A stretch of DNA of 64,000 bases from Epiperipatus broadwayi (GCA_028023455.1 JAQFVV010000005.1:4154001-4218000); one strand, 5' to 3'. Counted from the stretch's first letter, positions 359 to 64,000 are shown. Translations and numbers: made by a program. Notes: generated from the sequence alone by a model not told the origin.

Positions 359-3300
359 AATAATAAAATAGTTTATTACTCAGGAATTTATATGAAATTC
401 AAGCCTTGGCAATAACAATAGGACCATGATATATGGATCTGGGATCCAGAGTCCGCTACTCCGCCACAACACAAAATCGTGATAGAAATAATTTACAGAG
501 AATATTTGATGGTTTATTGGGTTTATTATATCTGTCTATCTAAAACAAAATAAATAAATCACTTTACAACTTATTAAAAAGCAACTATTATCTGGTCCAA
601 GTTTGAATCTAGGATGTAGCCATAGTAGAGACATGAACTATGGCTACATACATGATATTCTTCATTATTTACACGTAATTATATTATACATCAGTTAATC
701 AAGCTTAACATATTGAGCCAAATATTGTCAAACATTGCCAAGGCCATACTACATATAGATAAAAAATGGAAAACCACTTTTTATCCCCATCTAGGTTATA
801 TATATACACTAATAAAAAATTGAGTACTAATGGGGTGAAATTGCAGATCATCAAAAAAGTTTAAATGAATATTATATCACTCAGTCTAGATTAATGTAGG
901 CAAACTTGTATCAGGTTTCATTAACTTCTTAGTGAATTTATAATTTCATTCTGCTCTGTGTCTTAACCTTGTCATGGACAAACAAGGCAATTAAATCGAG
1001 GTTGTAACATTTAATGTTGCATACATGTGTCCTTCATAATGAATAATTATTTTATTAAAATGATTTTCTTAACTAAATTTAACTTCAAATTAATTTTAGA
1101 CAATACTAGAAGAATAAACATATTATAAAAGAATCAATTTATTTAAGGAAATAAAAAACAAGGTTTTTTTTATATTAGCCAGAGTAATATAACATTTTTA
1201 CTATATATCCACACCAGTTTAGATAATATATATATGCTTATGCTATAGCTCTGAAGAAGATTGCTAGACAGTCAAAACTGTAAAAATGTTTTGCCAAGTT
1301 GAATAAATTGTTGCACGGTAAAAAATATATAAAGAAAAGAGTATTTGTTTAATTGCTAAAATATCATATATTTTATATTTATAAAATTGGAATGTTTTAC
1401 AAATTATCAAAACAATCTAAAAAAATTATCTTGCAGTCATTCTAGTTGACAAAAAAACTTAAACAAGAGTTAGCATTTTGTGCAAAATGAAATCTGCAAT
1501 TAAATCTTACCTTTGAACTATAGAGGTTTATATTTTGCTACACCTGCCATCTATTAATAAAGGTAAAAAAATGAAGTATATAATGTTACCATTCATTTAA
1601 AAATATTTACAGTAAGATTTCAGTCAACTATCATTCAAGTATTCTCTGACTATATTGTGACTGACAAATTTAAGTAGAACTACCACCTTGAAATGACAAC
1701 AAATTTATCAATAAAAAATTATTCTTATTAACAGGTATGAGATTTCATTAAGTTCTTGGAAGTTTTATAATTTCACTTAAAAAAATTTCAACTGTTTACC
1801 ATATATTGTATATAACAACTCAGATGTGCATAGAAAATGGTGTTTTTTTTATGTATGTATAGAGTAACATTGTCAATCATCAGTGAAATTTAGTTAGAAA
1901 TGTTATTTGTGATGATTTTTTTAGCAGGTTACATAATTAAATATAATTGCTAGTTTAGCTCTTGGCATTTTTGATCTATATTCGCTTAACTAGTTCTAAG
2001 TATTTAACATTTAATTATAAATATTTTTATTTTAGATGAGGGCTCCATCTAATTCTCATACTAATTATGCTATTCATGCATTAATTATGCTAAGATGTTG
2101 ATATCATACTGCTAAATTGTCTAACTTCATAAATCTGAAACTATTTTTAAGTGCTATAAATGTTAGAACACTCTATTGATAACATTTTTATACTGAACTA
2201 ATTTTGTCTTGTGTGGCAATAATGACCATGGTGATAAAATTGGATAGACATGAAGACTTGTAGTTAGTTAAAAATTTCCCAGATAAGCTTTGAATTTAGA
2301 TAGTGTTAATACATTCAATTCATTAAATAAATATCTACAAATTTTATGTTGGGGAAGTAATCAATGTTTTAGGCAGTAGTCAAAGTCAGTCATTTAAATA
2401 TCAAAGTAATACCCAAATAACTTCTATGCATGAATAAAGGGAATGTTGACTCCTATAGTTATTAAACCTATATAATTTATTTTATCTTTATGATAATTTT
2501 CTGGGAGACACATATATTTTTCACAATAATTTACATGAAATGATATTTTGAAGAAATAATATCTTAATTCAGGAGTTAACCAAAAATGGTTAAAAGAAAG
2601 AAATACTAATGTTTATAATACTATTTATGATATATACATTTATCATTTAAGATATTGATAACCAATAATACAAACACAAAAATAGAATAAAAAAATATAA
2701 ATAAATACAGTTCAATTCTTTTACAACTACTGTCAATATAATAGTAATGATGAATTATTACCATTTTGTACCACCATTAATTAAACTTAAGAAAAATAAT
2801 ACAAAGTATTACTAAGATATATAAACAATCCAGATCAGAAATTAAATTAAACTCTTTATGTTGTGCATGTAATGATACTAAAATCCACGTCAGTAAATAA
2901 CATTTTTCCCAAGATGTTTAATGCATTTTTATTATTTTTGCATTCTCTATATTAAATAAATGCCTAAAATATTTTAATTCTTTTTTACATTTTTTTTTAT
3001 TTAATTCAATTACTGGATAATTTTTACTGTTACTAGTCTTTTTGAGAGCTGTTTTAAAACTAACTCCAAAAAAAATACACTCTCAGATTACTGAATTAAA
3101 TAAAACATTGGGAAAAGTATAAAGAAGAGAATGTTTTTAGATATTTAATTAAGTAAAATTTCTCTCAATATTTTTAATGGGATAATCATAAGTCATTCTT
3201 TCAGTGAGTTTTTAAAATTAATCCATAAAAAGTATATCTATATAAAACTTTTAATGTATCAACACATATAATTATAAACAAGGCAAAACTCTCCATACAG

Positions 3301-3380
3301 TAGTGTCACCCTGTGCCAACCAGAGTAATCAATGGATGCCAGAAGACTTGTGCATAAAATCCCTATCTAATGCCTGCTCA

Positions 3381-3437
3381 TCCAATATCCCCAGACTAGT
3401 TTCTGGCTTCTGGCCTTCGTCAGTGAGGAGCTTTGGG
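3381..3437 (-). ncRNA. Type I hammerhead ribozyme (family A), core intact
   Basis: Minus strand: CCCAAAGCTCCTCA-CTGACGA-AGGC CAGAA GCCA-GAAA-CTAG-TC-TGGGGATATTGGA. Stem I TCCTCA/TGGGGA. Confidence 0.8.
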
Positions 3438-3458
3438 TCTGAGAGCACTGCACCTAGA

Positions 3459-3515
3459 TCCAAAGCTCCTCGCTGATGTAGGCCACAAGCCAGAAACTAG
3501 TCAGGGGGTATTGGA
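3459..3515 (+). ncRNA. Hammerhead ribozyme (family A), degenerate
   Basis: CTGATGT (A9 changed) AGGCCACAAGCCA GAAACTAGTC AGGGGGTATTGGA. Confidence 0.6.
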
Positions 3516-3992
3516 TGAGTAGGCATTAGATATGAATTTTATGCACAAGCCTTTTTGGCATCCATTGATTACTCTGGTTGGCACTGGGTGGCACTATTGC
3601 ATGGAGAGTTTTGCCTTGTTTATAAACAATTATGTACTAGTATAAGAGATGGTGATCATGTGACATATAATTATACTTTAAATAGATATACACTTTACAG
3701 AAATATGTTTTGTAGAAATATCAGCTTAAATATGCATTGTAGGATTTATCGAATGATAGAATGGCATTGTCTGAGATTAAAGTGTTCCTCATTGGATTCT
3801 CCACAGAGTAAAATAAATCTTTAATTTGTGATCTACAAGTACTTGAGTTTGATATTAATAGAAAAGACTTCACTTTTTTCTAATATCTTAAAAGAACCAA
3901 ACAGATTAAGCTCCTAATGTGTATTTTATACATCTTGTCATTAAACTTGAAATTACCTTATGATTGATCATAAACAAAAATATAAGGATTGG

Positions 3993-4470
3993 TCACTGAT
4001 CCTCATCCACCAAGGTGATAAGTTTTTTTCTTAAAGAAATTTTATTCATTGCTATATTAAATGCTACAAATATAAAAATGACATCAATTACATATCTATT
4101 TGAGGCAAAGTAGATCCAACCTTCTCCCATGTTGCTTTTGTGATATAGCTTGGAGCAATTAGTCAGTCCCTCTTCATGATTTTCTCCCATAACTTTTTTG
4201 AATTTAATAGTGTCCATAAATAGACCCTGACCTACATAGTCATTAATTGATTTATAGTTTTCATTCATATTGCTGTACCATTCATGAGTTATCAATCTAT
4301 AATTGGACATACTGGGACATTTACTGGCTTAAAATGAAGAACTATCCATGAACTCAAGTGTCTGGGAGTTATTAAATGACACATCATTTGGATTTTCTTG
4401 AAAGCAGATGTGTATCTTTAAATGCTCATTCATTTTTATGCTTACAATGTAACAGTCAAAAAATAAACCA
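3993..4470 (-). pseudogene. Penelope-like reverse transcriptase fragment
   Basis: Frameshifted minus-strand translation ...LHFKPVNVPVCPIID... resembles the PLE RT start motif (HKPxVPxRPII), followed by the ORF-track peptide at 3993-4310. Confidence 0.5.
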
Positions 4471-13474: not shown

Positions 13475-13518
13475 ACCAATATACGTATTTCATGCTAAAC
13501 CAGCAATCATCAGTTGGT
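13475..13518 (-). ncRNA. Minimal type I hammerhead ribozyme (family F), core intact
   Basis: ACCAA-CTGATGA-TTGCT GGTTT AGCAT-GAAA-TACGTA-TA-TTGGT: 5-bp stem I, palindromic stem III, UA cleavage site. Confidence 0.82.
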
Positions 13519-17400: not shown

Positions 17401-18238
17401 ATAAAAGAATAGGTAAATTTATAAACTTATTTAAATCTATAAACTTTTGAGACCTTAGTTTAAATTTAATTAAATTGTGTTATACCTAAAGACTTTCCAT
17501 TCCAATATTTTATCATGCCATTTATGTGTTATAAAGCATTAGCACCTACCATTTATTTATTAACCTTAACATATTTATTGAATCTTTTTTTTTGTAAGAG
17601 CTATTTGATTTTTTTTAAAGATTGCAAATGATAGCAAGCTATGGAAATACAGTTTTTAATAATTTGATTTTGATTAATGATCACATCAATAGATTACCCC
17701 AGAAATCATTATTGTTCTAGGGGAATGAATTAATATGAAATTGAAATCTGAGGATATCAGCAAGTTTGTGAAATGCTTATTTGGATCAAATATTAAAATG
17801 CAAAAAGCTTAATACCTCTGATTGGTTGCTTATCAGAGCTAGGATTTGATTATGGGTTTGTATTATGAATTTAATTAAAATATAGTAGCAGTTATTAAGG
17901 ATTTTAAACCACAATTCACATTTGTTATGATGTATATCACTTATACATATAAAAATAATTTCACAACATCTGTAATGCATTTGAGATTTTTACACCTCAT
18001 AATTTAAAGATATATAATGCAACATACAGGAATGTTTACTATTTATGTGTTTGTCTTTAGATTTACAAGAAAATTTGATATGAACCATTAAACATCACAT
18101 AATCACTATTTCTTAGGCTTTCACAAACTGTTTACACAGAGGCTGAACTCTCCATACAGTTGTACTACCAGTGCAATCCAGAGTAATCAATGGATACAAG
18201 AAAATTTGTGCATAAAATCCCTGTCTAGTTTCTACTAA

Positions 18239-18296
18239 TCCAATATCCTCAGACTAGTTTCCAGCTTGTGGATTTCATCAGTGAGAAACTTTAGAT
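18239..18296 (-). ncRNA. Hammerhead (family A), stem II degenerate
   Basis: CTGATGA AATCCACAAGCTG GAAACTAGTC TGAGGATATTGG. Confidence 0.55.
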
Positions 18297-18447
18297 CTGA
18301 AAGAACTGCACCTAGCTAATGAGATTATATTGAAAATATTATTGTGTTTTCATTTTGAACTCAAAGCTTTATAGTTAGATAATAAGGTAAAAGGTGGCTG
18401 CTGGAGGATTGCATTAGATCCTAAGATCTAAGTGCAGTTCTCTCAAA

Positions 18448-18504
18448 TCCAAGGTATCTCACTAATGAAAGCCACAAGCCAGAAACTAGTCTGAGGATAT
18501 TGGA
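18448..18504 (+). ncRNA. Hammerhead (family A), degenerate core CTAATGA
   Basis: CTAATGA AAGCCACAAGCCA GAAACTAGTC TGAGGATATTGGA. Confidence 0.55.
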
Positions 18505-18900
18505 TGAGTAGGCACTATATAGGGATTTTATGCATAAACTTTCTTGTATCCATTGATTATTCTGGCTTGCTCTGGTGACAACACTGTATGGAGAGTTTAG
18601 TCTCTGTGTAAGCAGCTTGTGTAAGCATAATAAATGGTGATCATGCATTATTTAGTGGTTTAAAACAAATCCTGCCCAATAGTATTCTGGTGGTTCTGCT
18701 TATTAAAGAATCAAAGACACCAAAAAATATGGATGCTGAACTGAGTTCAGATTTATACAATTATACAAACTAATGAGCTTGAATTAAAAAAATTATTGTG
18801 TTTTCATTTTGAAACCAAAGCTTTATAGTTAGCTAATAAGTTAAACTTGGCTGCTGGAGGGTTCCATTAGATCCTAAGATCTAGGTGCTGTGCTCTCAGA

Positions 18901-18957
18901 TCCAAGGCTCTGCACTGATGAAAGCAACAAGTTAGAATCTAGTCTGGGGATATTGGA
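18901..18957 (+). ncRNA. Hammerhead (family A), degenerate (GAAT)
   Basis: CTGATGA AAGCAACAAGTTA GAATCTAGTC TGGGGATATTGGA. Confidence 0.55.
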
Positions 18958-19399
18958 TGCATAGGCACTAGATGGTGATTTTATGCACAAACCTTCTTGC
19001 ATCCATTTATTACTTTGGCTTGTACTGGTGGTACTACCGTATGAAGAGTTTAGCCTCTGTCTAAAATTTGATACAGTTATCATTATGCACTTTATTTATG
19101 ATATATATTTTAAAATATTTGTTACGGTTTGCTAATATACACATTTGCTTATATAATTATGTAGATGCTGATGATGTACTAGGAAATGATTAAATGGGTA
19201 TTGATATGACCACTAATATAAAAAACTGGTAATAATTAGCATGTGCGACTTGAGCCAGATCATATTGAGTTCTTGTATGATAAGAATGGTATTCAAAATA
19301 TTTGCACACACATCCCAAGCTTTGTCTAATCAACAGCAACAGTGTTATATACGCATATTTAAATATATTAGAAAATAATCAAAATAAAAAATAAAAAGA

Positions 19400-20151: not shown

Positions 20152-20455
20152 TATTAAGCAATTAAATCACCCCACATGGTTAAGAAATCCAGTACTGCCC
20201 TCTGTGAACTAATATATAAATACGAACTCTAATGTATTTATATATTAGTTCACAGAGGGCAGAAATCACCCCACATGGTTAAGAAATCCAGTACTGCCCT
20301 CTGTGAACTAATATATAAATACGAACTCTAATGTATTTATATATTAGTTCACAGAGGGCAGTACTGGATTTCTTAACCATGTGGGGTGATTTAATTGCTT
20401 AATATTTGTACATTTATTTCAGTATAGCATTATGCACTGGGATTATTTTATATAT
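20152..20455. repeat. Family D perfect fold-back with internal 99-bp tandem duplication
   Basis: Arms AAATCACCCCACATGGTTAAG...ATAAATAC and its reverse complement; 20164-20262 repeated at 20263-20361. Confidence 0.92.
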
Positions 20456-24080: not shown

Positions 24081-24480
24081 CTACATAGTTATCTAAATGT
24101 TGTACATTATAGTTTTGTACTTATTGGTATAAATTACCCAAACATAGTTTTTGTGCAATATTTTCATACATCCTTATTGATAATAATCATCTTTCAATAA
24201 ATATATAAATGATTATTAAGCGCTTTTATTTCATGAAAAATTACATTTAATGTCATCTTACATATAAACTTATATATATAGTACAAAGAAATTAAAAGTT
24301 TTAAAAAGCAGAAATTATCAACACCCCTATATAACATCACATGACCACCATCTCTTATGCTTGTGTATAACTGTTGTTAAAACTGGTAAACTCACTATAC
24401 GTATGCCACACACAGCAAGCTAGAGTAATCAATGGATGCCAGAAGGCTTGTGCATAAAATCCCCATCTAGCACCTACTCA

Positions 24481-24537
24481 TCCAATATCCCCAGACTAGT
24501 TTCTGGCTTGTGGCCTTCGTCAGTGAGGAGCCTTGGA
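24481..24537 (-). ncRNA. Type I hammerhead ribozyme (family A), intact
   Basis: TCCAA GGC TCCTCA-CTGACGA-AGGC CACAA GCCA-GAAA-CTAG-TC-TGGGGA TA TTGGA; predicted cut between 24494 and 24493. Confidence 0.85.
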
Positions 24538-24933
24538 TCTGAGAGCACTGCATCTAGATCTTAGGATCTAATGCAACCCTCCAGCAACCACCTTTTATCT
24601 CCATTTAACTACAAAACTATGAGTCTTAAACCGAAAACACCTTAATGTTTCCAATTCAAGCCCATCAGCTTATATAGTTATATGGGTCTGAACTCAGTTC
24701 AGTTCCCATACATTTTAGTGTCTTTGGTTCTTTAATAACCATAGCCACCAATATCTTATTAGGCAGGATTGGTTTTAAGCCAATAAACATCACATGACCA
24801 CCATCTCTTATGCTTGTGTATAACTGTTGTTAAAACTGGCAAACTCACTATACGTATGCCATACACAGCAAGCTAGAGTAATCAATGGATGCCAGAAGGC
24901 TTGTGCATAAAATCCCCATCTAGTGCCTACTCA

Positions 24934-24990
24934 TCCAATATCCCCAGACTAGTTTCTGGCTTATGGCCTTCGTCAGTGAGGAGCCTTGGA
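24934..24990 (-). ncRNA. Type I hammerhead ribozyme (family A), intact
   Basis: Same fold with loop CATAA; predicted cut exactly 453 nt from the previous one. Confidence 0.85.
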
Positions 24991-25153
24991 TCTGAGAGCA
25001 CTGCATCTAGATCTTAGGATCTAATGCAACCTTGAATTGGAAACATTAAGGTGTTTTCGGTTTAAGACTCATAGTTTTGTAGTTAAATGGAGATAAAAGG
25101 TGGTTGCTGGAGGGTTGCATTAGATCCTAAGATCTAGATGCAGTGCTCTCAGA

Positions 25154-25210
25154 TCCAAGGCTCCTCACTGATGAAGGCCACAAGCCAGAAACTAGTCTGG
25201 GGATATTGGA
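25154..25210 (+). ncRNA. Type I hammerhead ribozyme (family A), intact
   Basis: TCCAAGGCTCCTCA-CTGATGA-AGGCCACAAGCCA-GAAACTAGTC-TGGGGATATTGGA; predicted cut after 25197. Confidence 0.85.
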
Positions 25211-25480
25211 TGAAAAGGCACTAGATGGGGATTTTATGCACAAGCCTTCTGGTATTCATTGATTACTCTAGCTTGCTGTGTGTGGCATACGTATAGTGAG
25301 TTTTCCAGTTTTAACCCCTATATAAAAAATGTGATTGAGGATTGCAATTACCTGTCACTTCTATACTAAAAGATAATTGTGATGCAGGTAAGTTTGAGAC
25401 AAAAAGTGTGCTGATAAAAATAAGGCACTTAAAAACATAAGATGACACAAGGATTATCTACTCTTTCACAAGGTACTTAC

Positions 25481-28900: not shown

Positions 28901-29409
28901 ATACATTCAAGCATGCACATACATATTCAAATATTATATTAAAAGTTTGTGTCACTATTGAGTGTATTTTTAATATTGCAAATACATTAATATAAATATT
29001 GCTTTACTTGGCTTATTTTAATTTATTCATATATTGACAGTATTATGCATCTTTATCACCGTATTATTATTTTAAAACTAACTACTAACTCTAAATGTGT
29101 GTGTGTGTTTATATTTAAATATATAACCATGATTATTAATATTTCTACAAGAATTTTTAAAATGATATTTAAAAAAAATATTATGGGCAGACATTTTGCA
29201 TTCTTTTAAATTTTTGCTTTATATAGTAGCTAAGAATATAATGTTAACACTACTCTAACAATAATGATAATAATATTAGTAATAATAACAAGCCAATAAA
29301 ATTTTTGCGGTTATATTTATTATTATTATTTAAATATACCAAATAACCATCACAATATATACATATAAGTGCAAGGAAATCTTGTCATATATCACATGAC
29401 TTAATTTAA

Positions 29410-30262
29410 GAGTAGTAATTAATTTATTGAACATACAGAAAGCATATGTAAATACTTTAACAGGCTTTGACCTGTGTTCAATGTGCTTTAAAATTCATAA
29501 TAATCAAGCACATTTTTCCGACAGAGGAACCTTCCAAACCATGATGCAAGATAGCGACTTTTATAAAGATAAGAGCAGCCATCTTATCTTTAAACTAAAT
29601 GTCTACTTATATAAGCAAATCTGAAGCATTTTGATTTGGAAGCATGAAGTTGTCGTTTTCTCCACTGCGCTCAATAAATTAATTACTACTCTTCAATAGT
29701 TTATAGAATTTCCAACATTAAGATCATAATATTAACTCACTGTAAATCGCAAGATTTTGCATAAAAGTGATTATTTAATATCTTCATGCTTTCACTTTCA
29801 AACACTTAAGATTTGCGCATACAAAAGCGTTTGGGTTTGAAAAGATAGATGGCCATTCTATCTTTTCCAAAGACTTTATCATGTGTTCGAAGTGTTTGTA
29901 TTCATTCATTTTATAGTTAAAATCCAAAGCACATGTGCAACAGTTTAATGCTGTTTAAAATATTACAGTTTGTAAAAAACATCACACTATATAAAATAAT
30001 TGACTTATTTACATATGTTAATTTGTAAAAGAAATAGTGGACTTAAACAATGGAGAAAACAACAACTTCATGCTTCCAAATCAAGATGCTTCAGATTTGC
30101 CTATATAAGTGGACATTTAGGTTAAAGATAAGATGGCCACTCTTATCTTTATAAAAGTTGCTATCTTGTGTCGTGGTTTGGAAGGTCCCTCTGTCAGCAA
30201 AATGTGCTGGATTATTACAAATTTTAAAGTGCATTGAAGTCAGATCAAAGCCTGTTTAAAGT
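29410..30262. mobile_element. Family H fold-back insertion, about 215-bp inverted arms
   Basis: Arms about 29453-29669 and 30048-30262; 14-bp direct repeat ATGACTTAATTTAA at 29396-29409 and 30263-30276. Confidence 0.8.
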
Positions 30263-30292
30263 ATGACTTAATTTAATAAGTTTGTACTACAA

Positions 30293-37130: not shown

Positions 37131-37139
37131 TTGAAGCAT

Positions 37140-38440
37140 GAAATAACCCCCACCATTACCACCAACTGCAGCTTCATCACTCTAACTAACACTTTCCCTC
37201 CCAATAACATCAAAACTATGCTAAAATCTAGCACAATTTGTGGGAAATGGCTAAAATAGTCCAATGATAGAGTTCATCACTGATGTGGAAACAAGATTTG
37301 CAAATAACCCACATAAAGAAAAGATAATTGAACTAATTTCTAAAACCATTCAACATAAGCTTATCAAATCAAACAATGTTAATTGGAGGAAGGAAATAAA
37401 TGTCACTAAGCATTACCTCTTAGATGATAATATTATTTGCATAAAAGAGAATAAAGAGAATAGGTTTGTTTTTCTCAATAAACAAGATTATTTGAATAAG
37501 ATGAACATCCAAATAAGAAAATTAAAACTCATTTAATACCTTTCTATAATTTAAAAACAATCAAGGATAAATTTATATCTGAAATCTTAAGAAAACATTG
37601 TGATAGTGCCTTTATCAAAAGTGAATATTACAAAATGTATTCATCAGTCATCATGCCTCCCACAAATGTTTGCAAAGAACAAACAACATAAACCCATAAC
37701 CCCACTCAGGCTAATGATAGATTCTAGTGGAGCACACTATTACAGCATCATAAAGATGAGAAATCAGTAGTTCACTGATCAATTACAATTTGACTTATTT
37801 GTCATTAAATTCAAGTTTGTCAATAAAAGTAAAAACCTAATTATTGGCTACAAATGCAGGATAGCATCTCTAGACATTACTGAATTATATGAATCAATAA
37901 ACAGAAAACAGTCAATCAACATCATAAGACATGCACTCACAATATCTAATAATTCACAGAAGTGAATTTATTTTATAATTGACTTTTTAAACTGCATTGG
38001 ATAAATCATCATCCTCCTCTTTAATGAACAACACTACACAATATGGAAAAACAGCTGGCCAATTTGACTACCCATAAGTGAAATCATATATTTTGAAACA
38101 AATGCACTCTCCAAATATTTTGAAAAATACACCGGATATAATATACACATGGTACATCAAACATGAGTTCACTGAGAAATCTGCATTAACATGAACTTTA
38201 AAGCACAAAGACTCTCAAAAAAGAAATAAAATACCTTAACATATACATCCAAAGAAAGATTAAGTACCTAAATTATAAAATTGTAATTGAATCCATTGAA
38301 AGCAGAGGTTACATATATTCTGATTCCATCAACCCCAACTCACATAAATATGCTTGTCTAATAACTTTTCTATATAGAAATTTAAACCAAATGGTATATG
38401 AAATCTCTATAGAGTTATTTATAAAGTGTAAAGAAAATAA
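37140..38440 (+). mobile_element. Second Penelope-like copy, head-to-head with the previous one
   Basis: Reverse-complement homology to about 35250-36560; ORF 37264 ...FVFLNKQDYLNKMN (pre-RT motif). Confidence 0.82.
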
Positions 38441-38853
38441 GTGTCACCCATAAAATTCACTTCTTTGATTTATGTGTTATGATAAGTAATAATTTATTTA
38501 TAGTTAGTACATTCTTAGAGCCAGAGCACAGATGGTGATTGGTATTGATATAATAATCTCATCACTTTTATATATATATATTTACTTTTATAATTATTTT
38601 AGAAAATATATACGTATATGCAGTAGAAATATTGATTATTGCTATTTTACAGTATTATGCACCAAATTTGGCATTTGCTTGATGATGGCTGTCTTATATC
38701 CAGTCACAATTGGATGGTGCTATATTTGTTATATAATTGGTGTCTGGTACTGATTTTTTGTAGTAAAAAAAATGCTACTATTTAGTATTTGGTTTCCTGA
38801 AGGTTTATGATGATGGCATTTCAGTTGTATTTATATACTGAACTATTTTCATC

Positions 38854-39287
38854 ATCTAAGAAAAATTTAACTTTATTTAAATTTTCAAAGTACATTCAAT
38901 TGTTAGCAATAGCACAGAGGTTAGTATAGCAAAATGTTTCAAGAGGTAATTTATTCCCTTCTCTTCTTCAAGTGTTTCTAGTCTAACCAGTGATAGTACT
39001 AGCATGAGAACTGAACCAGGATCCTTAGATTCTTGAATATTGAATTTTATGATAACACTATAGAATGGCTCAGTTGATTAAAACTTTATCTTAAAATTCA
39101 ATGTTCAAAAATCTAAGAATCCTGATTCAATTCCCATGCTTGTACTATCACTGGTCATTCCAACAATACCTGATGAAGAGAGGAAAATAATATCTCCTGA
39201 AACATTGTGGATATACTAACATGTGTGCTATTACTAATAGATGAGTGTACTTTGAAAATTTAAATAAAGTTAAATTTTTCTAAAGAT
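38854..39287. mobile_element. Family C fold-back: tRNA-like Pol III head plus hammerhead-like motif
   Basis: A box TGGCTCAGTTG (39066); B-box-like GATTCAATTCC (39124; GGTTCAGTTC in the other arm); CTGATGA...GAAA at 39170-39202, mirrored in the left arm. Confidence 0.65.
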
Positions 39288-39540
39288 ATTTAATAATTTA
39301 TATTAGATGGTGGATAAAGTCCAATACATAAATACAAATATTTAGTATTTGCCCTTGGTAATCCTTTGTTATGTATTATTACTATATATATATAAAATAA
39401 AACAAGTTATAAATTTTGTAACTTGCTTTTAAGCTTGCATTTAAATGATCACTAGATAGAGTTTTCTAATAGCTCTAAACAAGCTTTGTTTTTATAAGTG
39501 CCGAAAGAGAAAGGATTCAAAATTTCTATCGTTGACTCTC

Positions 39541-39586
39541 CCTCCAGACCAATTGTTTTCAAGCCTATGGCTCACCTCAGTGGAGG
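39541..39586 (-). ncRNA. Hammerhead (family B), variant core
   Basis: CCTCCA CTGAGGT GAGC CATAG GCTT GAAA ACAATTGG TC TGGAGG. Confidence 0.65.
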
Positions 39587-39884
39587 GCTGGGTCTCTAAA
39601 AACTAGATCTAAAATACTAACTCAAAAGTCAGCACTTATAAAACACGTTTCTATCAATTCAAAAGTCTGAACTTTTTGGAAGTGTAAATGTCTTCAAATC
39701 CAGCTTTGCAAACCAGATAGTTATATGGGTCTAAATTCAGCTCCATGTAGCTATCTGGTTTGCAAAGCTGGATTTGAAGACATTTACATGTCCAAAAAGT
39801 TCAGACTTTTGAATTGATAAAAATGTGTTTTATAAGTGCTGACCTTTAAATTAGTATTTTAGATCTACTTTTTAGAGACCCAGC

Positions 39885-39929
39885 CCTCCACTGAGGTGAG
39901 CCATAGCTTGAAACCAATTGGTCTGTAGG
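39885..39929 (+). ncRNA. Hammerhead (family B), variant core
   Basis: CCTCCA CTGAGGT GAGC CATA GCTT GAAA CCAATTGG TC TGTAGG. Confidence 0.7.
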
Positions 39930-40302
39930 TAGGATCAATGGTAGAGATTTTGAATTCTTTCTCTTTCGGCACTTATAAAAACAAAGCTTGTTTAGAGTTA
40001 TTAGTAAGCTCCATCTAGTAATCATTTAAATGCAAGCTTAAAAGCAAGTTACGAAATTCACAACTTGTTTTATTAATTATTATAAGTGTACCTTTGATGG
40101 CTTTTGTGATGCTATATTGCAGAGGCTATTACTATATCATGAAACTGAGCTGAATTCAGTTCCATATAGCTATCTTGTTTAAAAATCTGGATTTAAAGAC
40201 ATTTACGTGTCTGAAAAGTTCAGACTTTCAAATTGATAGAAACATATTTTATAAGTGCTGACTTTTGAGTTAGTATTTTAGATCTAGTTTCTAGAGAACA
40301 GC

Positions 40303-40348
40303 CCTCCATTGAGATGAGCCATAAGCTCGAAACCAATTGGCCTGGAGG
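40303..40348 (+). ncRNA. Hammerhead (family B), variant core
   Basis: CCTCCA TTGAGAT GAGC CATAA GCTC GAAA CCAATTGG CC TGGAGG. Confidence 0.65.
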
Positions 40349-40552
40349 TAGGATCAACGATAGAGATTTTGAATTCTTTCTCTTTCCACACTTATTAAAA
40401 CAAAGCTTGTTTAGAACTATTGGTAAGCTCCATCTAATGATCATATATATATATCAAGGACAAAGCATCCATCTATTGAATGGAATGAGTGCTTCCATAG
40501 AAAAAATTACTAAAACTTTCAAAACATTAATTAAAATTCAATTTAAAAAATT

Positions 40553-45381: not shown

Positions 45382-45638
45382 TATAAAATAATCCCAGTGC
45401 ATAACGCTATACTGAAATAAATATACAAATATTAAACATTAAATCACTCCACACGGTTAAGAAATACAGTACCGCCCTCTGTGAACTAATATATAAATAC
45501 ATTAGAGTTCGTATTTCAAAATGTATTTATATATTAGTTCACAGAGGATGCGTGTGCTGGATTTCTTAACCGTGTTGCGTGATTTAATATTTGTATATTT
45601 ATTTCAGTATGGCGTTATGCACTGGGATTATTTTCTAT
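45382..45638. repeat. Family D fold-back
   Basis: About 120-bp arms homologous to the 20.15-kb copy. Confidence 0.9.
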
Positions 45639-45734
45639 ACATTTGTGTTAGGTGGTTTAAAGATTAAAATTACTAAAGTTTAGTTTGTCTTTATATAATA
45701 ATAGTAAAACATGTTTGTTTGTAGCAAAGTTCTT

Positions 45735-45858
45735 GTCTTGCATTGGTGGTCCAGAGATCAGCACGACTGCCTTGCACTTGTAGGCGGATGCCTGGGTTGC
45801 CCAACCCGGGTTGCGGGTTCGCGTTCCGGCCAATGCTATGATACTTTAAAAAAAAAAA
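45735..45858 (+). mobile_element. tRNA-derived SINE (family S1), longest copy
   Basis: A-box-like TGGTCCAGAGATC, B-box-like GGGTTCGCGTTCC, poly-A tail. Confidence 0.82.
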
Positions 45859-45891
45859 TTTCAATTTCAATATATAACATCATATAGCAGA

Positions 45892-46085
45892 CTCTGTGAA
45901 CTAATATATAAATACATTAGAGTTCGTATTTCAAAATAGCCAGATCAAAATGATACCACTTATATAAAAAAATGTGATGTCATTTTGATCTGGCTATTTT
46001 GAAATACGAACTTTAATGTATTTGTATATTGGTTCACAGAAGGCGGTACTGGATTTCTTAATCGTGTGGGGTGATTTAATGTTTA
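45892..46085. repeat. Family D fold-back with a different turning point
   Basis: Centre near 45966; the arms include AGCCAGATCAAAATGA, absent from the other copies. Confidence 0.88.
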
Positions 46086-46192
46086 ATATTTATATATAAT
46101 ATTGGAAACTTTAGAGTTATAATTTTCAAAATAAAAGGAAGGAATTATTATTATTGGTTTTTTTTTATTATTTGAAAGTATATATATATTAT

Positions 46193-52640: not shown

Positions 52641-53821
52641 AATTATACTGCATATCTGTGTGCATATATCAATGCATGTCATATAGACATATATATTTAA
52701 TCCATTGCTTATTATTAAATGACCATTCAAATAGGTTCATTTTATCTTATACCACACATCTGGGTGCTGACATATATAGGTGTTTTATTTAAACATATTG
52801 GAACATATATGTAGATCACAATGTGATAATTTAAATTTTGTATTTATGCTAATGAAAATCAGAAGACTTAATTCATATGTGTATAGCTGTATTCTGCAGA
52901 TATTAATGTCATTTTTATTGTTATGAATAAACTTATATTTCATTGTTAAAATTATTTCAGTGAATTTAATTCTAAATAGTTTTAGAATATTATAGGTTGC
53001 ATCATATCTTGGTCACTGTAAAAGTTATAGGGCCTGTATTCACTGAGCTACATTGTGCATAACACTCTATTATAAAAGGTGGATGTATATTAGTGTTTGT
53101 GGCCATTCAGTTGATTATGGCCATCCTGTGCAAAGAGGATATAAGTCTATGCACTACATTTTATTTAGTTTAGTATTTATCAAGATTCAAGTTTATAGGT
53201 GGCCAGTACATTAATGGTACTAAGTGACCAGATCATTGATGATGGTCAGTATGTTTTAATATCCCAGAATTATTGATTTTATTATATATATTTTGATGGA
53301 TTAGTACTTAAGTTTGTGCATCCAAGCTGGAAAAGGCTAAATAGATAGCCTGGTTTACAGTAGACACATTTCAAATCCAATCACAAGATTTACTGTTGAT
53401 TTATTTTGATTGTTGATCATTCAGATAATAAATTAGTACTACTTATACTTATTTTTAATTCTGGTGAACTTATAGTTAATTATGCTTATACTTAAGATAG
53501 TTAGTTGTGCTGATCTCTTAGAGTGATCTCTCAAGATCTCTTATGCTCCTAGTTTATATTTTATATAGTGTGTTAAATTTTATATGTTGACTTCCAGTGG
53601 AAGACCAGTCCCCATACCTAAGTTCAACCCCTCCATGAATTCGTACCATTACAATATGTATAATGTAGGATATTTATCTGTATTTTACATCACACAGCAT
53701 TTATCAGATGTAAGTCAGGTCTGCAAGAGGGTAATATGATTTACTTACATGATTCTATATGGCAGGCAAAACTCTCTATACATATTACCAAATATCTAAA
53801 TAATAAAGATATACCAGATGC

Positions 53822-54063
53822 TAAACCACTAAACATCACATGATCACCGTCTCTTATGCTAGCACATAACTGTTATTAAACAGGCAAAACTCTCCATACA
53901 GTAGTGCCACCCTATGACAACCAGAGTAAGCAATGGATGCCAGAAGGCTTGTGCATAAAATCCCCATCTAGTGCCTACTCATCCAATATCCCAGATTAGT
54001 TTCTGGCTTGTGTCCTTTGTCAGTGAGGAGCCTTGTATCTAAGAGCACTGCACCTAGATCTTA
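53822..54063 (-). mobile_element. Family A single arm with degenerate hammerhead (53982-54037)
   Basis: Homologous to 24335-24560; core CTGACAA and GAAACTAATC mutated. Confidence 0.88.
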
Positions 54064-55001
54064 GCATCTACTACAATGAATTAATTTGTTTCACAAAGAC
54101 ATTCTTTTCATTATTAATTCATTGCCACATACAATGAAGTACATATACTTAGGGACAATATGGTTACAGCTTTGAACAAGGTTACCATTCAAAGCAACCA
54201 TTTAAGAAGAAAGGTATAATATAAAACTAAAAATATAAATGTAAAATTAATTCCTGGATGTAATGTACAGTTTGATTTTAGTAAAAATTAAACTTAAATT
54301 TTTGAAGTAAAAAAATTATAAACAAAATTATTCTCAAACCATTTCTTGGCCTTTCCGCAAATTATTGTTCATTAATACCATTATGTGCTGTTTGTTTTTG
54401 ACTAATCCATATTATCAAAAGGGGTTTTCATTTTTTCAGTGACATGATAATCTGCTCAATTTGAACATTTTTTCACAGTTTGTGCAATGTTTAACCATTT
54501 ATTTTATAAAAAGGTGCAGATGTTGTGTTTTACATCAAATTTAGAACTTAAATCACTAATTCTTTTATCACTTTATCTTTTTTAAAAAATGATCTTTATC
54601 TTAACCTCAATACTAATTAGTTTTGTGAATCTATATTTCTGACTAATGAATAAAACTATTTTTTATTAAATGTATAAATAAAATTAAAACTAATAAAGTT
54701 AAACAAATTGCAGAATAAAGACTAAACTCTAATACACCTTACATGACAAAAATGAGTCATATTTTACTTAATACTAAAATATTCTAAAAATATTAGCACC
54801 TGTCATTTCTATATTTTTAAATATTTGTAATATTTTTTATTTCTTCCAATAATATTTGGTCATTCCTTAATTAAGATTTAAGTCATTTTTATCTTATTTT
54901 CAGTTTTAAATTATTTCTTTTTTAACATTAATGTGAATATGTTATTAAATTCTGCTTTTGTAAATAATCAAGAAGTTACCTGAAGCCTTTGTCTATGATT
55001 G

Positions 55002-57452: not shown

Positions 57453-58421
57453 GTATTATATTGATTAATTAACATTTTTATTTTAATGTACTATACAAGC
57501 TTTTCTTAGTATACATATCAAATGCATTACTTATATTGAATAATATTAATAATAAAAACTACTTCTATTATGCAGTTTAAACAATGCAATTTTTTATATA
57601 TCATTTTGAAAAAAAAAGCTGTCAATTTTGACTGTTTAACAGTTTTTCTCAGAGATGTAATATACACTATGTATTCATAAATATTCTAATCATAATAACA
57701 TACACAAAAAAAATGTTTATACATCCTTATACCACATATAATTTTTAATTTAATGCAATATAATTTTATTATATATTTATATCACATTGAAAGTGAGTAA
57801 ACATTTAATTATAGCTGTAATTAATTTTTAAATAATCAACTTTAAAAAAAAATTAATATTTTTGTTAATATTTATTAATATGAGGATTTAAATTTGATCT
57901 TTTTTTATCAACTTTATTTATTCATCTTGCCTTTAACATTAAATGCTTTATTGCCATGTTATATATTTCTTTAATTTTTATTATGAGATATTTATTGCCT
58001 ATTTTATGTACTATTGAGTATTTTATTCATTCATTTATTTTTAAATTATATTTTGCATTTATAAATAGATCACCCATATACGGGAATATCACTATAAGTG
58101 CATTTTATCATTCTTTATCTTTCATAAAAAAAAATTTTTAAAGACGTAAACAGTAAACAAATAATAAATAGGTGGACTTTTATTTTAATGAAGTAATGCG
58201 TTATAGAGGATGTAAAATTCCTCAAGATACTTTCGAACAAATACACTTGAATTGAATGTACAAATAAATAATAAAAGTATACAATATATCTTTTAATTTG
58301 CAGAAAAGTACATTTGTAACTACCTGTTTCTTTTGTAAAAAATTCTTCACTGCATTTTGATAAAGCAAGAATATAAAGATACAAAAATAATTATTTAATT
58401 AAGCAGAACTATAAGTAAACA

Positions 58422-59967
58422 TAACTTTGCTAAAAAAAATTGTTTCTTCACCTGCTTTGTTTAATATATCAATTATAATTCCATCATTTCCTGGAGCCTT
58501 TCCTGTCTTCATACATTTAATTGTATGTCTCACTTCTTCATTTAACATTCTAGGCAATTCGGAAGATGTAATAAATATAGGAGGTATTTGTTCTTTATTA
58601 CCGTATAATTTTTGATGTCTAAATAATAAAGATGTACCAGATGATTGGAAGAATGCAGTATTAATATTAATATTTTAAAAAGTGATAAAGAAGATATTAG
58701 AAATTACAGACCCATCGGCCTTTTATTAGTTTTATACAAAATTTTTACCAAGATAATTACAACTCATCTACAGAGAACATTGGATTTCCACCAACCAAGA
58801 GAACAAGCTGGATTTAAAAGTGGTTTTAGTACAGTAGATCATATTCAGGTATTGAAAGAAGTTATAGAAAGGACAGATGAATATGAGTTGTCATTATGTT
58901 TTGGATTTGTAGATTATGAAAAGGCATTTGATTCTATAAGCATTTCTTCAGTGATTAAAGCATTGGATCATCAAGGTGTAGATCCAGGATATTGTCATAT
59001 TTTAAAGAATAAAATGCAACAGCAACAATTTGATTACATAATGATACTGGGAAAGTCAGCATTGAGAACAGTGTAAGACAGGGTGACTCCATATCTCCAA
59101 AACATTTTACAGCAGTGCTGCAAGAAGTATTTTGTGGATTAAAATGGAAATCTAAATGAGTGAAAGGAAATGGAGATTATTTAAGTCATTTAGATTTTGC
59201 AAATGATGTAGTTGTGTTTGCAAATAATGCTTTAAAGCTGCAGGAAATGTTACAGGAGTTATCAGATAAATAGGACTAAAGATAAATGTTAACAAGACTA
59301 AAGTAATGTTTAATGGATTTTCTCAAAATATGAAAATAAAAGATTGATTATGATGAATTAGAAGAAATTGACAGTTACAAATACCTTGGTCAGATTATTA
59401 ATACAGATGGAAACATAATGGATGAAATTAATCATAGAATTAAACTTGGTTAGAGTGCTTTTGGAAGAAATAACTTGATACCAAAAGAAAATATGCCTAT
59501 GTGTTTGAAAAGGAAGGTTTTTAATAAATGTGTTTTGCTAGTTTTTACTTATGGATCTGAGATTTGAACACTTAATAGAAGAGCAATACAGAGACTTCAG
59601 ATCATCCAAAGAAATATGGGGAGATGCATGTTGGGAGTAACAAGAAAAGTTCGAAAATTCAACATATGAGTAAGAGAACAAACAGGTGATATTGACCTCA
59701 TTGAAAAATTAAAAGACTGAAGTGGAGTTGGGCTGGACATATTGCTAGAAGAGATGATAATAGATCGACAATTGACATCTTAAACTGAATTCCAAGAGAT
59801 TGTAAAAGACCCAGAAAGAGACCACATGTGGGATGGATGGATGAAATAAGAAAGTGTGCAGGGGTGATGTGGAAAAGAGAAGCTAAAGATTGGAGAAGAT
59901 GGATTGAACTTGGAAAGACCTTCATCCTGCAGTGTATTGATAATAGTTGATGATGGTGATGATGATG
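58422..59967 (+). mobile_element. RTE-clade LINE, 5'-truncated with 5' inversion
   Basis: RT motifs NYRPIGLL, QPREQAGF, FVDYEKAFDS, RQGDSISP; (GAT)n tail; minus-strand segment 58422-58618 encodes EEV...KTGKAPGNDG; TSD ATAAGTAAACA at 58411-58421 and 59968-59978. Confidence 0.92.
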
Positions 59968-60877: not shown

Positions 60878-60957
60878 CTTTTCATTTTAATATTGCATAG
60901 CAAAAGCTAGTAGTTTTAAGATAATCAGTCAATTAAACTAAAAGCTTTTTAAAAAGT

Positions 60958-61110
60958 ACCAAACTCTCCATACCATAGTGCCATGAAGTGCAAGCCTTGG
61001 TAATCAATGGATGGTTTATGCAAAAAATTGTTATCTGGTACCTACTTATCCAATATCCCCAGTCTAGTTTTTAGCTTGTGGTTCATCAGTGAGGAGCCTT
61101 GGATTTGAGA
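60958..61110 (-). mobile_element. Family A arm with degenerate hammerhead (61049-61103)
   Basis: CTGATGA ACCACAAGCTA AAAACTAGAC TGGGGATATTGGA. Confidence 0.8.
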
Positions 61111-61334
61111 GTATATATTTTAATAAAAATATATTTTCTTCTTTTAAAAACTTTTACTGAAACAGTTGAATAAATGTATTTGTTTCTTCTTCATCTTCTT
61201 CCTCCCCCTCCTCTTATTATTATTATTAGTAGTAGTAGTAGCAGTAGCAGTAGCAATAGTATTGTGCAAAACTTTGCTCATTTAAAAAAAGTTGTTAGAT
61301 GATAAGCTATACTTTACTAGTATCATTATCTCAT

Positions 61335-61548
61335 TAAAACATCATATGATCACTTTCTCTTATGCTTACACAAAATTGAGGGCACTGTTGTCATATCCAA
61401 GACTTTAAATAATGATACCCATAAAGTAGAAACTAGGCTGGTGATATTGAATTAGAAACCCTTATATAGGGATTAAAATGCACCTCTAGCATCTATTGAT
61501 TACTAAATCTTGCACTAGGTGGCATTATTGTGTGGAGAAATTTGCTAC
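61335..61548. mobile_element. Old family A fold-back fragment
   Basis: CATCATATGATCAC... arm, then the inverted arm GAAACTAGGCTGGTGATATTG...TGGAGAAATTTGC. Confidence 0.6.
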
Positions 61549-61905
61549 AAGAGAATATACATGTAAATGGAAAAATATGGGGGATTTATTTTGTAAATTA
61601 TGTAAGGAAGGAATAGAAAATATTAGGCATTTGTTAATTGAATGTATATGCTTGAAAACAGAAAGGGTACATATAATGAAGTTATGGAAGAATATGAAAA
61701 AAGTGATTATACAGAAAGTGAATTATTGGTTTTTATGCTGGGTTTGTGAAAAGATAAAGGGGATTTAGATATAAAGGTTATAGAGTTGACAAAGATTATG
61801 TTGTGGAAATGGGATGGAACAGAATATGGGAAAGTTTAGAGTAGGGAATGGAAAATAAAGTGGCTAACAGGTTTATCTGTGCATAATTGCTGAGATATTC
61901 TCGAC
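61545..61905 (+). mobile_element. LINE 3' fragment with CCHC zinc finger
   Basis: CKLCKEGIENIRHLLIEC; same family as 14033-14465. Confidence 0.78.
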
Positions 61906-62480
61906 TTCGTTTAAGGAGAAGCCACAATACATCACTTCACATCACATCTATTGTCATTATTATCCTTAATATTTTTTAATATATAAACTAACAATAATGA
62001 AATTTAAATTTTTCATTATTATTTTATTCTTCACACTATATTACATTTAATAAAAAAATATTTTAGTCTACAGCTTCTAATCAATTTCCAAGTTTTTACC
62101 TGAAATTTGTGTAACTTTCTTTTGATATACCTTTTTCTATATCTAGATTCTTTATTACAATAGTATTATTTTGTTTTGCAACCATAATTTTAGAAATTGC
62201 AATATCTTTTTTAATTAAGGTTTGAGCCAAGCTACTTCTCTTTATCTCTCATAGTGTTGGTTTTGCAATTTAAGTTTTATTGTTGAATAATAAATTAATT
62301 TATTACATATTTATGTAATTGGTACTATAGCTGGAGTGGCTATTTAGAATAATATATTTGCAATAAAATAAAATATACCTACCAATATGTTGTTTCATAA
62401 TTTGATCTGAGAATTTTAATCCTTAGAAATATTCATTCAAGAGATTTTGTAGTATTTTGGTACTGAAAGCCAAATTAACT

Positions 62481-62533
62481 ATCAACTCGAGGTCTTTTAG
62501 GTCTCAAATTCGTCGTGCTACCACTAGACCACA
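62481..62533 (-). mobile_element. tRNA-like head (SINE remnant or tRNA pseudogene)
   Basis: GTGGTCTAGTGGTAGCACG...CCTCGAGTTGA (A-box and partial B-box). Confidence 0.4.
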
Positions 62534-62689
62534 TACAATAGGATTTAAGAATTTTTTCGAGTGATTATTTTTTGTTTTTCTTTTACAATGTTAAAATTAA
62601 TTTTAAATACTTCATTATCAATATTAATTGTTAAACTTTCAGCAAACAATCTTAAATTATTCATTACTTGTTCAACATTATAATGTGTC

Positions 62690-62750
62690 ATCACATGATC
62701 ACAATTTCTTATAATTGCACCGAGTGGCACTACTGTATGGATAGTTTTTG
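62690..62750. mobile_element. Tiny family A fold-back fragment
   Basis: CATCACATGATCAC... joined to inverted GAGTGGCACTACTGTATGGATAGTTTT. Confidence 0.6.
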
Positions 62751-63217
62751 TACTTTTAATGTGTCCGTTCTATTTTTTTTTCCAAGTTGATTATTTTTTG
62801 CATTTTCTTTACAATAATAATGTTAATTTTAAATGCTTCATTATAAAAATTAATTGTTAATCCTTTTATAAAAAAAAAAGTCCTAAATTATTCATTTTTT
62901 GTTTAACACTTTTGATGTGACATTCTAATTTTTTGCTTCTGAGATATGCATCATTAAAAATGCAAATAACATAATTATACAAGAAAATAATTAATTAAAA
63001 CAATTTTTTTTTTCAAAATTTCACTATAATTGTCATAATAATTTGGGGTCAGTTTTTTTAACATAGAGGTCATATACTAAAGTTTAAAAAAAAATCTACG
63101 TACAATTTTCTTTATGAAAAAGTTTTTAATACATTTGGATTAACAATAATACAAAAGCAAGAAAACTGTTATGTTGATTAAGTTAAATTACATATAAATA
63201 ATTTATTGCTTTCTGTA

Positions 63218-63513
63218 CATCACATGATCACCATCTCTTATGCTTGCTCATAACTGTTATTAAAACAGACAAAACTTTCCATATGGTAGTGCCACTCAGT
63301 GCAAGCCAGAGTAATCAATGGATGCCAGAAGGCTTGTGCATAAAATTCCTATCTAATGCCAATGGATGCCAGAAGGCTTGTGCATAAAATCCCTATCTAA
63401 CACCAATGGATGCCAGAAGGCTTGTGCATAAAATCCTTATCTAATGCCTACTCTGCACAAGACTTCTGGAATCCATTGATTACTCTGGTTTGCACTGAGT
63501 GGCATTTTGCCTA
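63218..63513. mobile_element. Family A fold-back insertion lacking the HHR, with a 44-bp triplication
   Basis: Starts CATCACATGATC; 9-bp TSD CTTTCTGTA at 63209-63217 and 63514-63522; 44-bp unit at 63317, 63361 and 63405. Confidence 0.9.
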
Positions 63514-64000
63514 CTTTCTGTATAATCAGATTGCAGTACTCAGACAACTGATGCACATTTTTTGAAACTTATTTTATCTAATAATAAAAGTCAGTTGCCT
63601 TTTTATTCAATACTATTCAATGGATGACTGGATTGCATATAGTTTGGGTGACTTATGATTCCTAAATTGATTTGGAAAACCTCTTGCTATGTAGAAAAAA
63701 ATTAATTGATATTATGCCATGTTCAAATATCAGCTTTTGACAGTCAAAAAAACTAATTTATCTTATGAACATTATCTATAATATCAGAGTTATTACTTGG
63801 AAGCAAACAATTACTATATAGGTATATTGTTTTACATGATTGGTGCAGTATTAGAGTGACAGATTTTGAAATCCAAGATGTATGGATAGTAACTCTACCT
63901 TTGTCACTTCTAATGCACACAAGTGCTAAACCATTTAATTATTTTAAGATATGTGAATACTAAAAAATTTCAGGTATAATACTTTGGATTTTCATTAGCA

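Follow-up and report, generated by a model that had tools for sequence, protein, structure and literature searches.

A 64,000-nt stretch of the Epiperipatus broadwayi genome (GCA_028023455.1 JAQFVV010000005.1:4154001-4218000), called the window below, carries Family A, a non-coding repeat with a 453-nt unit whose copies lie as inverted pairs of arms (fold-backs) inside target site duplications (TSDs). Family A is probably an element with a hammerhead motif that moves by means of a Penelope-like reverse transcriptase (RT) with a GIY-YIG endonuclease (EN) acting in trans, and it can be called a non-LTR retrozyme or mini-pLTR element (pLTR, pseudo-long terminal repeat). In the proposed mechanism, a protein-RNA complex would nick the two strands of an AT-rich target at positions offset by 9-13 bp, and this stagger would give rise to the TSD. 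Each 3'-OH would prime cDNA at an internal RNA site defined by the protein, which would be neither the RNA end nor the ribozyme cut. One strand would start at a site called T1, about 106-117 nt after the cut, and the other 43-55 nt further downstream, at a site called T2 or T3. This difference in start site would leave a one-sided 'tail'. Head-to-head joining of the two antisense cDNAs, in many cases close to a short palindrome at unit position ~380-393, would complete a fold-back with its tails outward (tail-out).

The Family A unit and its insertions

The window is AT-rich, with a G+C content of 24-31%. Unit coordinates refer to a natural copy of Family A, the minus strand of 24494-24946 read as sense, in place of a consensus; unit position 1 is the first nucleotide 3' of GAAACTAGTC. 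The unit contains a hammerhead-like motif made up of CUGAUGA, a 3-bp helix II flanked by A opposite A, GAAAC and UAGUC, with a 6-bp helix I, a helix III that together with its loop is the palindrome ACUAGU, and a predicted cut after the final C. A motif scan placed it at 25168-25203 on the plus strand, with no Rfam match, and found further copies on the minus strand at 24941-24976, 24488-24523 and 3388-3423. Each 453-nt tandem unit in 24335-25030 bears the motif. This hammerhead is a motif-level call with a predicted cut, and it is used here solely as a marker of coordinate and strand sense.

A sensitive BLAST search of the window with a dimer of the reference copy found eight Family A loci, six fold-backs and two solo arms on the minus strand. 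Most of the copies are mini fold-backs of 67-390 bp. The fold-back at 3.3 kb (element 3277-3662; 3264-3675 with its TSD) lies between 13-bp copies of ACATATAATTATA at 3264-3276 and 3663-3675. Its minus arm (3277-3448) ends at T1, and its plus arm (3449-3662) ends at T2, at unit ~157. At 18 kb, the element at 18081-19062 (18070-19073 with its TSD) is flanked by the 11-bp AAAATTTGATA at 18070-18080 and 19063-19073. The minus arm (18081-18315) runs from unit 390 to ~172, at T3, and the plus arm (18314-19062) begins at unit 277, passes through one full unit and goes onward to T1. The element at 24335-25313 (24323-25325 with its TSD) has the 12-bp ACCCCTATATAA at 24323-24334 and 25314-25325. Here the minus arm (24335-25030) comprises 1.54 tandem units, from unit 369 to 159 (T2), and the plus arm (25031-25313) runs from unit 287 to 116 (T1).

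Two shorter insertions carry 9-bp TSDs. The mini fold-back at 62690-62756 (62681-62765 with its TSD) is only 67 bp long and lies between copies of TAATGTGTC at 62681-62689 and 62757-62765; its minus arm (62690-62721) covers unit ~128-159, ending at T2, and its plus arm (62722-62756) covers unit ~80-116, ending at T1. The element at 63218-63513 (63209-63522 with its TSD) is flanked by CTTTCTGTA at 63209-63217 and 63514-63522. Its minus arm (63218-63453) spans unit ~15-160 (T2), its plus arm (63454-63513) runs from unit 40 to ~110 (T1), and the hammerhead is present in neither. Within this minus arm, at 63316-63448, three tandem copies of unit 20-64 follow one another (44-nt period, 93% matches), and slippage or template jumping while the cDNA was being made may have left them.

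The weakest case is an old fold-back at 61326-61548, with 68-87% identity to the reference copy and no TSD detectable by our search. Its minus arm (~61326-61372) covers unit ~128-170, ending at T3, and its plus arm (~61382-61548) runs from unit 396 to T1. The solo arm at 53822-54076 is 5'-truncated, runs from unit 371 to ~171 and has a T3 end at 53822; a TSD search at this arm found none. The solo arm at 60947-61111 runs from unit 402 to ~117, with its T1 end at ~60947, and a search of its flanks gave only a 6-bp repeat, which is not significant. About 36 nt past the T3 end of the 53.8-kb arm, at 53762-53785, there is a 24-nt piece of the T1-end motif (GGCAGGCAAAACTCTCTATACAT) in the same orientation.

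Target site duplications and polarity

In five of the six Family A fold-backs, the TSD encloses the whole structure, with lengths of 13, 11, 12, 9 and 9 bp. The original prediction, made from the sequence of the window, had named the TSDs at 3.3, 24.3 and 63.2 kb (13, 12 and 9 bp), and all three were exact; those at 18 and 62.7 kb were added here. A null distribution was drawn from 20,000 random position pairs in the window, with a slack of ±6 nt at both boundaries. The chance of a TSD per site was 0.0055 for at least 9 bp and 0.0016 for at least 11 bp. All five TSDs abut the ends of homology, so the chance is at most 0.0055 for each.

In all six fold-backs the order from left to right is minus arm, then plus arm, meaning that both arms point outward in the hammerhead sense, as had been claimed. 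No tail-in pair, with a plus arm directly followed by a minus arm, was found among the Family A loci of the window. With the fold-backs of three other families described below, the tail-out orientation was seen in nine of nine (p = 0.002 under a 50:50 expectation). In each insertion, the top strand continues from the 3' end of the left TSD copy directly into antisense DNA, and on the bottom strand the 3' end of the TSD at the right leads into antisense DNA in the same way. Such a polarity is predicted if target-primed reverse transcription begins at two nicks with a 9-13 bp stagger, and a tail-in arrangement would not fit. The five reconstructed empty sites share no nick-site motif beyond AT-richness, in what is too small a sample.

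Outer ends and the one-sided extension

To compare the termini, the 14 Family A outer ends and two internal read-through copies were aligned in sense orientation. Seven ends form the T1 class, a cluster ~10 nt wide at GTTTTAA (unit 106-117, counted from the predicted cut) that comprises 3277, 19062, 25313, ~60947, ~61548, 62756 and 63513. Four ends, the T2 class, lie at CATGTGATG, unit 157-160 (3662, 24335, 62690 and 63218). The remaining three, the T3 class, lie 10-13 nt beyond T2, at unit 166-172 (18081, 53822 and ~61326). The original prediction of two recurring classes of outer ends was real in substance, but its CATCACATGA class splits in two, at unit 157-160 and 166-172. Of the seven coordinates it gave for the T1 class, four stand and three were off by 6-18 nt: 19080 becomes 19062, 60958 becomes ~60947 and 62750 becomes 62756. 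Its claim that the termini avoid the ribozyme cut was borne out, since no outer end lies at the predicted cut and all are 106-172 nt after it.

Each Family A fold-back combines one T1 end with one T2 or T3 end (6/6). One end of every insertion is therefore extended, by 43-55 nt, relative to the other. The same pattern of a single extension was found in nine of nine fold-backs from four unrelated families, namely Families A, B and C and a family at 29.4 kb. The extensions measure ~50 nt in Family B, 33 nt in Family C and 42 nt in the 29.4-kb family. If each end chose its start site independently, mixed pairs should make up half of the insertions at most, which gives p ≤0.016 for 6/6 and p ≤0.002 for 9/9.

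Three unrelated families with the same arrangement

The Family C fold-back (38792-39338) lies between 13-bp copies of TATTTAGTATTTG at 38779-38791 and 39339-39351, and it is extended only at the left, minus-arm end. Near 39170 its plus arm contains a hammerhead-like motif (CUGAUGA ... CUGAAAC). The 29.4-kb fold-back (29410-30264; 29398-30276 with its TSD) has a 12-bp TSD, GACTTAATTTAA, and again only its left end is extended. Pieces of this extension recur, in plus orientation, inside its 380-nt middle part, and no hammerhead core was seen in this fold-back.

The Family B fold-back (~39387-40443) has a further tandem unit on the plus side and extra sequence at its left end only. This sequence of ~50 nt belongs to the element: it is present in the internal right copy and absent from the terminal right copy. 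The flanks are TA repeats, which makes the TSD ambiguous and weak as evidence. Measured from the predicted cut of Family B itself, the short end lies ~101 nt and the long end ~151-161 nt after the cut, similar to Family A.

Inner junctions and the template

Inner junctions are given in unit coordinates as minus-arm inner end/plus-arm inner end. They are ~390-400/~390-400 at 3.3 kb, where the centre is near-symmetric, 390/277 at 18 kb, 369/287 at 24.3 kb, ~128/396 at 61.3 kb, ~128/~80 at 62.7 kb and ~15/40 at 63.2 kb. Because the junctions vary between insertions, each fold-back must have arisen at its own insertion, rather than by copying of a master that was already folded back.

In five of the six fold-backs, the two arms have 50-280 nt in common. 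The extensive overlap described in the original prediction thus holds for these five, but not for the 67-bp insertion at 62690-62756, whose arms (unit ~80-116 and ~128-159) share nothing. At 18 and 61.3 kb, the arms are non-nested: the T1 arm is longer inward (746 vs 235 nt at 18 kb; ~170 vs ~45 nt at 61.3 kb), and the tailed arm reaches further outward. With this geometry, neither arm can have been copied from the other, which argues against a simple snap-back of one cDNA.

When the solo arms are counted, 7 of 14 inner ends lie at unit 369-402, where ~1 would be expected (p ~3e-5), although this interval was chosen post hoc. The cluster adjoins the short palindrome AGATC CTAA GATCT, and it recalls the palindromes at the 5' end and inverted junctions of Penelope pLTRs (PMC3846280). 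Since the interval was picked after seeing the data, the hotspot is a lead only.

Partial tandems make up 1.54 units of the 24.3-kb arm and 1.65 units of the 18-kb arm. Identities between arms and between tandem units were 97.2%, 96.0% and 97.9% at 24.3 kb and 83%, 83%, 87% and 82% at 18 kb. Within an insertion, arms and tandem units are thus equally diverged, which fits with all parts having been identical at insertion and derived from one template sequence. A circle, a multimeric transcript and two RNAs of one source fit this equal divergence alike, and it does not tell them apart. In four of the six fold-backs, the arms cross the predicted cut site, indicating that those templates were uncut or circular.

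Family A in contigs from sequencing runs

Contigs of one DNA run and of three others, two labelled RNA and one of uncertain kind, were aligned to 24200-25450. From the DNA run, 247,758 contigs aligned to this Family A region, so the family is very abundant. Sequencing runs also suggest that Family A occurs in many related organisms. Among the best 15 of 1345 joints, 13 were head-to-head, running from a minus arm into a plus arm with varied centres, the other two were short deletions within one arm, and none was tail-to-tail. No position at which molecules start or stop in large numbers was reported. Summed depth was highest from unit ~370 through the cut to ~84 and 3-10x lower for unit 118-369. 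This profile fits a majority of short, pLTR-like copies. The RNA-labelled runs gave thousands of Family A contigs and none of the unique flanks; at this copy number, DNA carry-over would look alike.

Comparison with Penelope-like elements and retrozymes

The architecture of Family A is the canonical signature of insertion by Penelope-like elements (PLEs). PLE insertions are head-to-head inverted pLTRs with a TSD and a tail of 30-40 bp on one end (PMC3846280; PMC8557442). In the typical Penelope structure, one of the inverted pLTRs carries a 31-bp tail (PMC3846280), and the PLE tail is often at one end only (PMC8557442). Family A resembles the endonuclease-containing PLEs (Penelope/Poseidon, Neptune and Naiad) in its head-to-head, inverted, 5'-truncated copies inside one TSD, in TSDs that are short and variable (9-13 bp, compared with 8-13 bp in PLEs) and in the extension of just one outer end. 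It is also alike in its partial tandems, with the 24.3-kb arm consisting of a pLTR-like, an internal and a pLTR-like part, and in having a hammerhead-like motif in the repeated part and a palindrome near the inverted junction. Family A differs in that it has no open reading frame (ORF), its entire unit is 453 nt and it occurs mostly as mini fold-backs. The tail is 43-55 nt rather than 30-40 nt, and whereas the literature calls it 'often' or 'optionally' one-sided, exactly one tail was present in each of the nine fold-backs in the window.

A biochemical parallel comes from PAc, an Anolis Poseidon element whose protein cleaves and extends both strands in vitro (Frangieh et al. 2024, PMC11167929). 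The PAc RNA has two internal start sites of reverse transcription, located 111-118 nt into the ORF and lacking homology to the target; with the hammerhead cut at +26, the start is 85-92 nt after the cut, and the genomic 'tail' corresponds to the stretch that separates the two sites (PMC11167929). Ribozyme cleavage was not required, and ribozyme mutants inserted normally (PMC11167929). The geometry of Family A is the same but shifted by some 20-25 nt, with T1 at 106-117 nt, a second site tens of nucleotides further and the tail between the sites. Its footprints likewise point to both target strands as primers and to AT-rich targets. In agreement with the dispensable cleavage in vitro, Family A arms run through the cut, from a template that would be uncut or circular. 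Family A differs in having a long class with two sub-sites 10-13 nt apart. PAc also represents the biochemistry of one autonomous vertebrate element, whereas Family A is known from genomic footprints of a non-autonomous family.

Metazoan non-LTR retrozymes form tandem arrays and circular RNAs, according to two sources (Cervera and de la Pena 2020, PMC7229834; Li et al. 2026 preprint, 10.64898/2026.07.22.740005). In both, a link between retrozymes and PLEs is proposed from the hammerhead type, co-occurrence or distribution, and pLTR phylogeny (PMC7229834; 10.64898/2026.07.22.740005). A term search of these two papers gave no passage that describes fold-back insertion, fixed outer ends or a one-sided tail (PMC7229834; 10.64898/2026.07.22.740005). 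Family A is like these retrozymes in its short, AT-rich, non-coding unit, its putative type I hammerhead motif with a weak palindromic helix III, its tandem copies, TSDs of more than 4 bp, predicted rod fold and very high copy number. In the published description, helix III of minimal metazoan type I hammerheads is weak and palindromic, and these ribozymes are proposed to work as dimers (PMC4209133); the Family A motif, compared by description and with no Rfam match, fits this account.

The RNA of the 453-nt unit (24494-24946, minus) is predicted to fold into a rod of -158.9 kcal/mol, while shuffled sequences averaged -116 (z = -7.4). This predicted rod resembles viroid-like and retrozyme RNAs. 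In the fold predicted for the young copy, T1 lies in an internal loop, an arrangement not reproduced by the decayed 18-kb copy. At the tail region, RNAalifold gave just a 6-bp hairpin with no covariation, and circular folds of the young and old copies disagree there. A parallel to PAc in the form of an 'AC-rich stem-loop' was therefore rejected as a resemblance only. An exact-pattern scan with the 32-nt degenerate core of Family A gave no match in metagenome, viral and prokaryote-genome contigs.

Proposed mechanism and alternatives

The original prediction held that both target nicks prime reverse transcription at defined internal sites of the RNA. This idea is supported by the polarity, the fixed outer ends, the varying inner junctions and the non-nested arms. 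The nicking and extension of both strands by a Penelope-like protein, with internal starts at two sites, are taken from the literature. That every insertion event draws on both start sites, each of them a single time, is our inference, as is the way in which the two cDNAs are joined.

Several points weigh against mobilisation of Family A by a Penelope-like protein in this way. No Penelope RT/EN gene was found in the 64-kb window. Rfam gave no hammerhead family for the whole window, at gathering scores or at E up to 5, and no hammerhead model for the 151 nt around the Family A motif, at E up to 10. The sample is small, with six fold-backs from one 64-kb window, one of them lacking a TSD. The contig depth profile hints that extended ends are rarer than half of all ends, although the depth measure is unreliable. 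Loose contig ends (24404, 24868 and others) mark subfamily divergence at unit 85-117 of the reference copy and not junctions between element and flank. Lastly, PAc showed no strand difference in start site in vitro (PMC11167929), so a strict one-tail rule is not predicted, whereas Family A has one short and one long end per insertion.

A single target-primed reverse transcription could produce a similar structure if a cDNA started at T2 or T3, folded back at the palindrome with its 3' end or switched template, ran outward and halted at T1, where the protein would block the tail. Such self-priming has been discussed for rotifer Penelope elements. Palindromes reported at the inverted junctions of Penelope elements were read as its sign (PMC3846280). 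It explains one tail per insertion without further assumptions, and it agrees with the near-symmetric centre at 3.3 kb, the post hoc cluster of inner ends beside the palindrome and the T1 arm being within range of the T2 arm in three of six fold-backs. Yet at 18 and 61.3 kb the T1 arm is far longer than the T2/T3 arm and cannot copy that cDNA, and both-strand extension has been directly observed in vitro (PMC11167929). In addition, the arms at 62.7 kb have no overlap, and a self-copying cDNA would enter the target strand and leave an inverted flank in place of the direct TSD that abuts T1. We consider self-priming unlikely for these reasons.

Twin priming of the L1 type appears less probable still. 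Here, as reportedly described by Ostertag and Kazazian in 2001, a second target nick is said to prime cDNA, which places an inverted 5' part inside one TSD. The first primer starts at the 3' end of one RNA and the second anneals to a variable internal site by microhomology, which yields near-contiguous arms and poly(A) at one end. Family A shares the second-nick priming and the inverted part inside one TSD. The 67-bp insertion at 62.7 kb, with its non-overlapping, near-contiguous arms, would suit twin priming, as would the microhomology at T1 junctions, where 5, 2, 2, 4 and 0 nt are shared by the TSD and the element (sum 13, p ~1e-4 to 2.5e-3). However, no microhomology was found at the tail-less ends of Family C and the 29.4-kb family, and the T1 site is constant within 10 nt in seven of seven cases despite differing targets. 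Overlapping arms in five of six fold-backs, fixed internal sites at both ends and the lack of poly(A) or any other 3'-terminal mark also set Family A apart. It is very improbable that the fold-backs are DNA transposons, such as miniature inverted-repeat transposable elements (MITEs) with long terminal inverted repeats, or inverted duplications made after insertion or by assembly error. Short palindromic structures between direct repeats do recall such transposons. Family A, though, lacks their identical terminal inverted repeats and fixed TSD length: its TSDs vary from 9 to 13 bp, its termini are asymmetric, and its inner junctions, arm lengths and number of tandem units vary between copies. 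The arms have diverged by 3-17%, indicating old genomic DNA and not chimeras, and head-to-head joints are present in independent short-read contigs.

Priming by a Penelope-like protein from both nicks could be taken one step further, to an obligatorily asymmetric integration. In each event, a dimeric Penelope-like complex would start cDNA from the short site on one strand of the target and from the long site on its partner strand, with templates of identical sequence, possibly one RNA or circle, and would join the cDNAs at the palindrome near the head of the unit. This version is possible but tentative. If true, it would imply a coordination not seen in the published in vitro work, and the present genome, whose mini-insertions number about 10^5 across several families, would offer natural material for examining the rule.

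The original prediction also saw here a mechanism for Penelope-style inverted pLTRs. It matches the in vitro work on PAc and is hence not new; the idea of internal priming on both strands was already published in substance in 2024 (PMC11167929). What may be new, from one 64-kb window, is the strict one-tail rule in 9/9 fold-backs of four families, the evidence, drawn from the mini-elements, for arms that are independent cDNAs copied from a single template sequence, and the inner-junction hotspot at the palindrome. The insertion junctions provide independent evidence that animal hammerhead-bearing non-coding repeats (retrozymes) move by Penelope-like machinery, a link based so far mainly on co-occurrence and pLTR phylogeny. 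Genomic footprints of several unrelated families agree with the behaviour of one vertebrate element in vitro, in both internal starts and both-strand priming. Should the one-tail rule and the palindrome hotspot hold genome-wide, they would constrain how cDNAs are coordinated and joined in Penelope integration. Such structures also trouble short-read assembly, according to the literature (PMC8557442).

Other repeats in the window

Only two ORFs of at least 130 aa were found in the window, one for an unknown protein and one for an RVT_1 fragment. The latter (58645-59073, plus strand; Pfam RVT_1, E = 1e-12) is the only RT fragment in the window. Just upstream, on the opposite strand, is KAPGNDGI, a typical N-terminal motif of long interspersed nuclear elements (LINEs); the region with both spans 58399-59076. 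The fragment was considered as a Penelope-like RT and rejected, as its residues look LINE-like; it appears to be a non-LTR remnant, possibly inverted.

A palindromic, MITE-like family is present at 20164-20361 and 45401-46120 and begins AAATCAC(C/T)CCACA(T/C)GGTTAAGAAAT. These inverted repeats (20.2 kb and 45.4-46.1 kb) belong to a different family and were excluded from the fold-back counts. They match long-hairpin microRNA models in Rfam below the thresholds; the Rfam searches for the hammerhead gave no matches other than such ones to palindromes and fold-backs, all below gathering thresholds and treated as artefacts. At 45.7-45.85 kb, the MITE-like copies have between them a G+C-rich sequence with a tRNA-like appearance.

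At 35801-37906 there is a large inverted repeat, over 2 kb in length, whose homology extends past the arms first reported. Either a long fold-back or a DNA transposon could account for it. Another inverted repeat lies at 56.8-57.6 kb. Outside Family A, an isolated hammerhead-like core is present at 13476-13513 on the minus strand, with CTGATGA, an 18-nt helix II candidate and GAAA.

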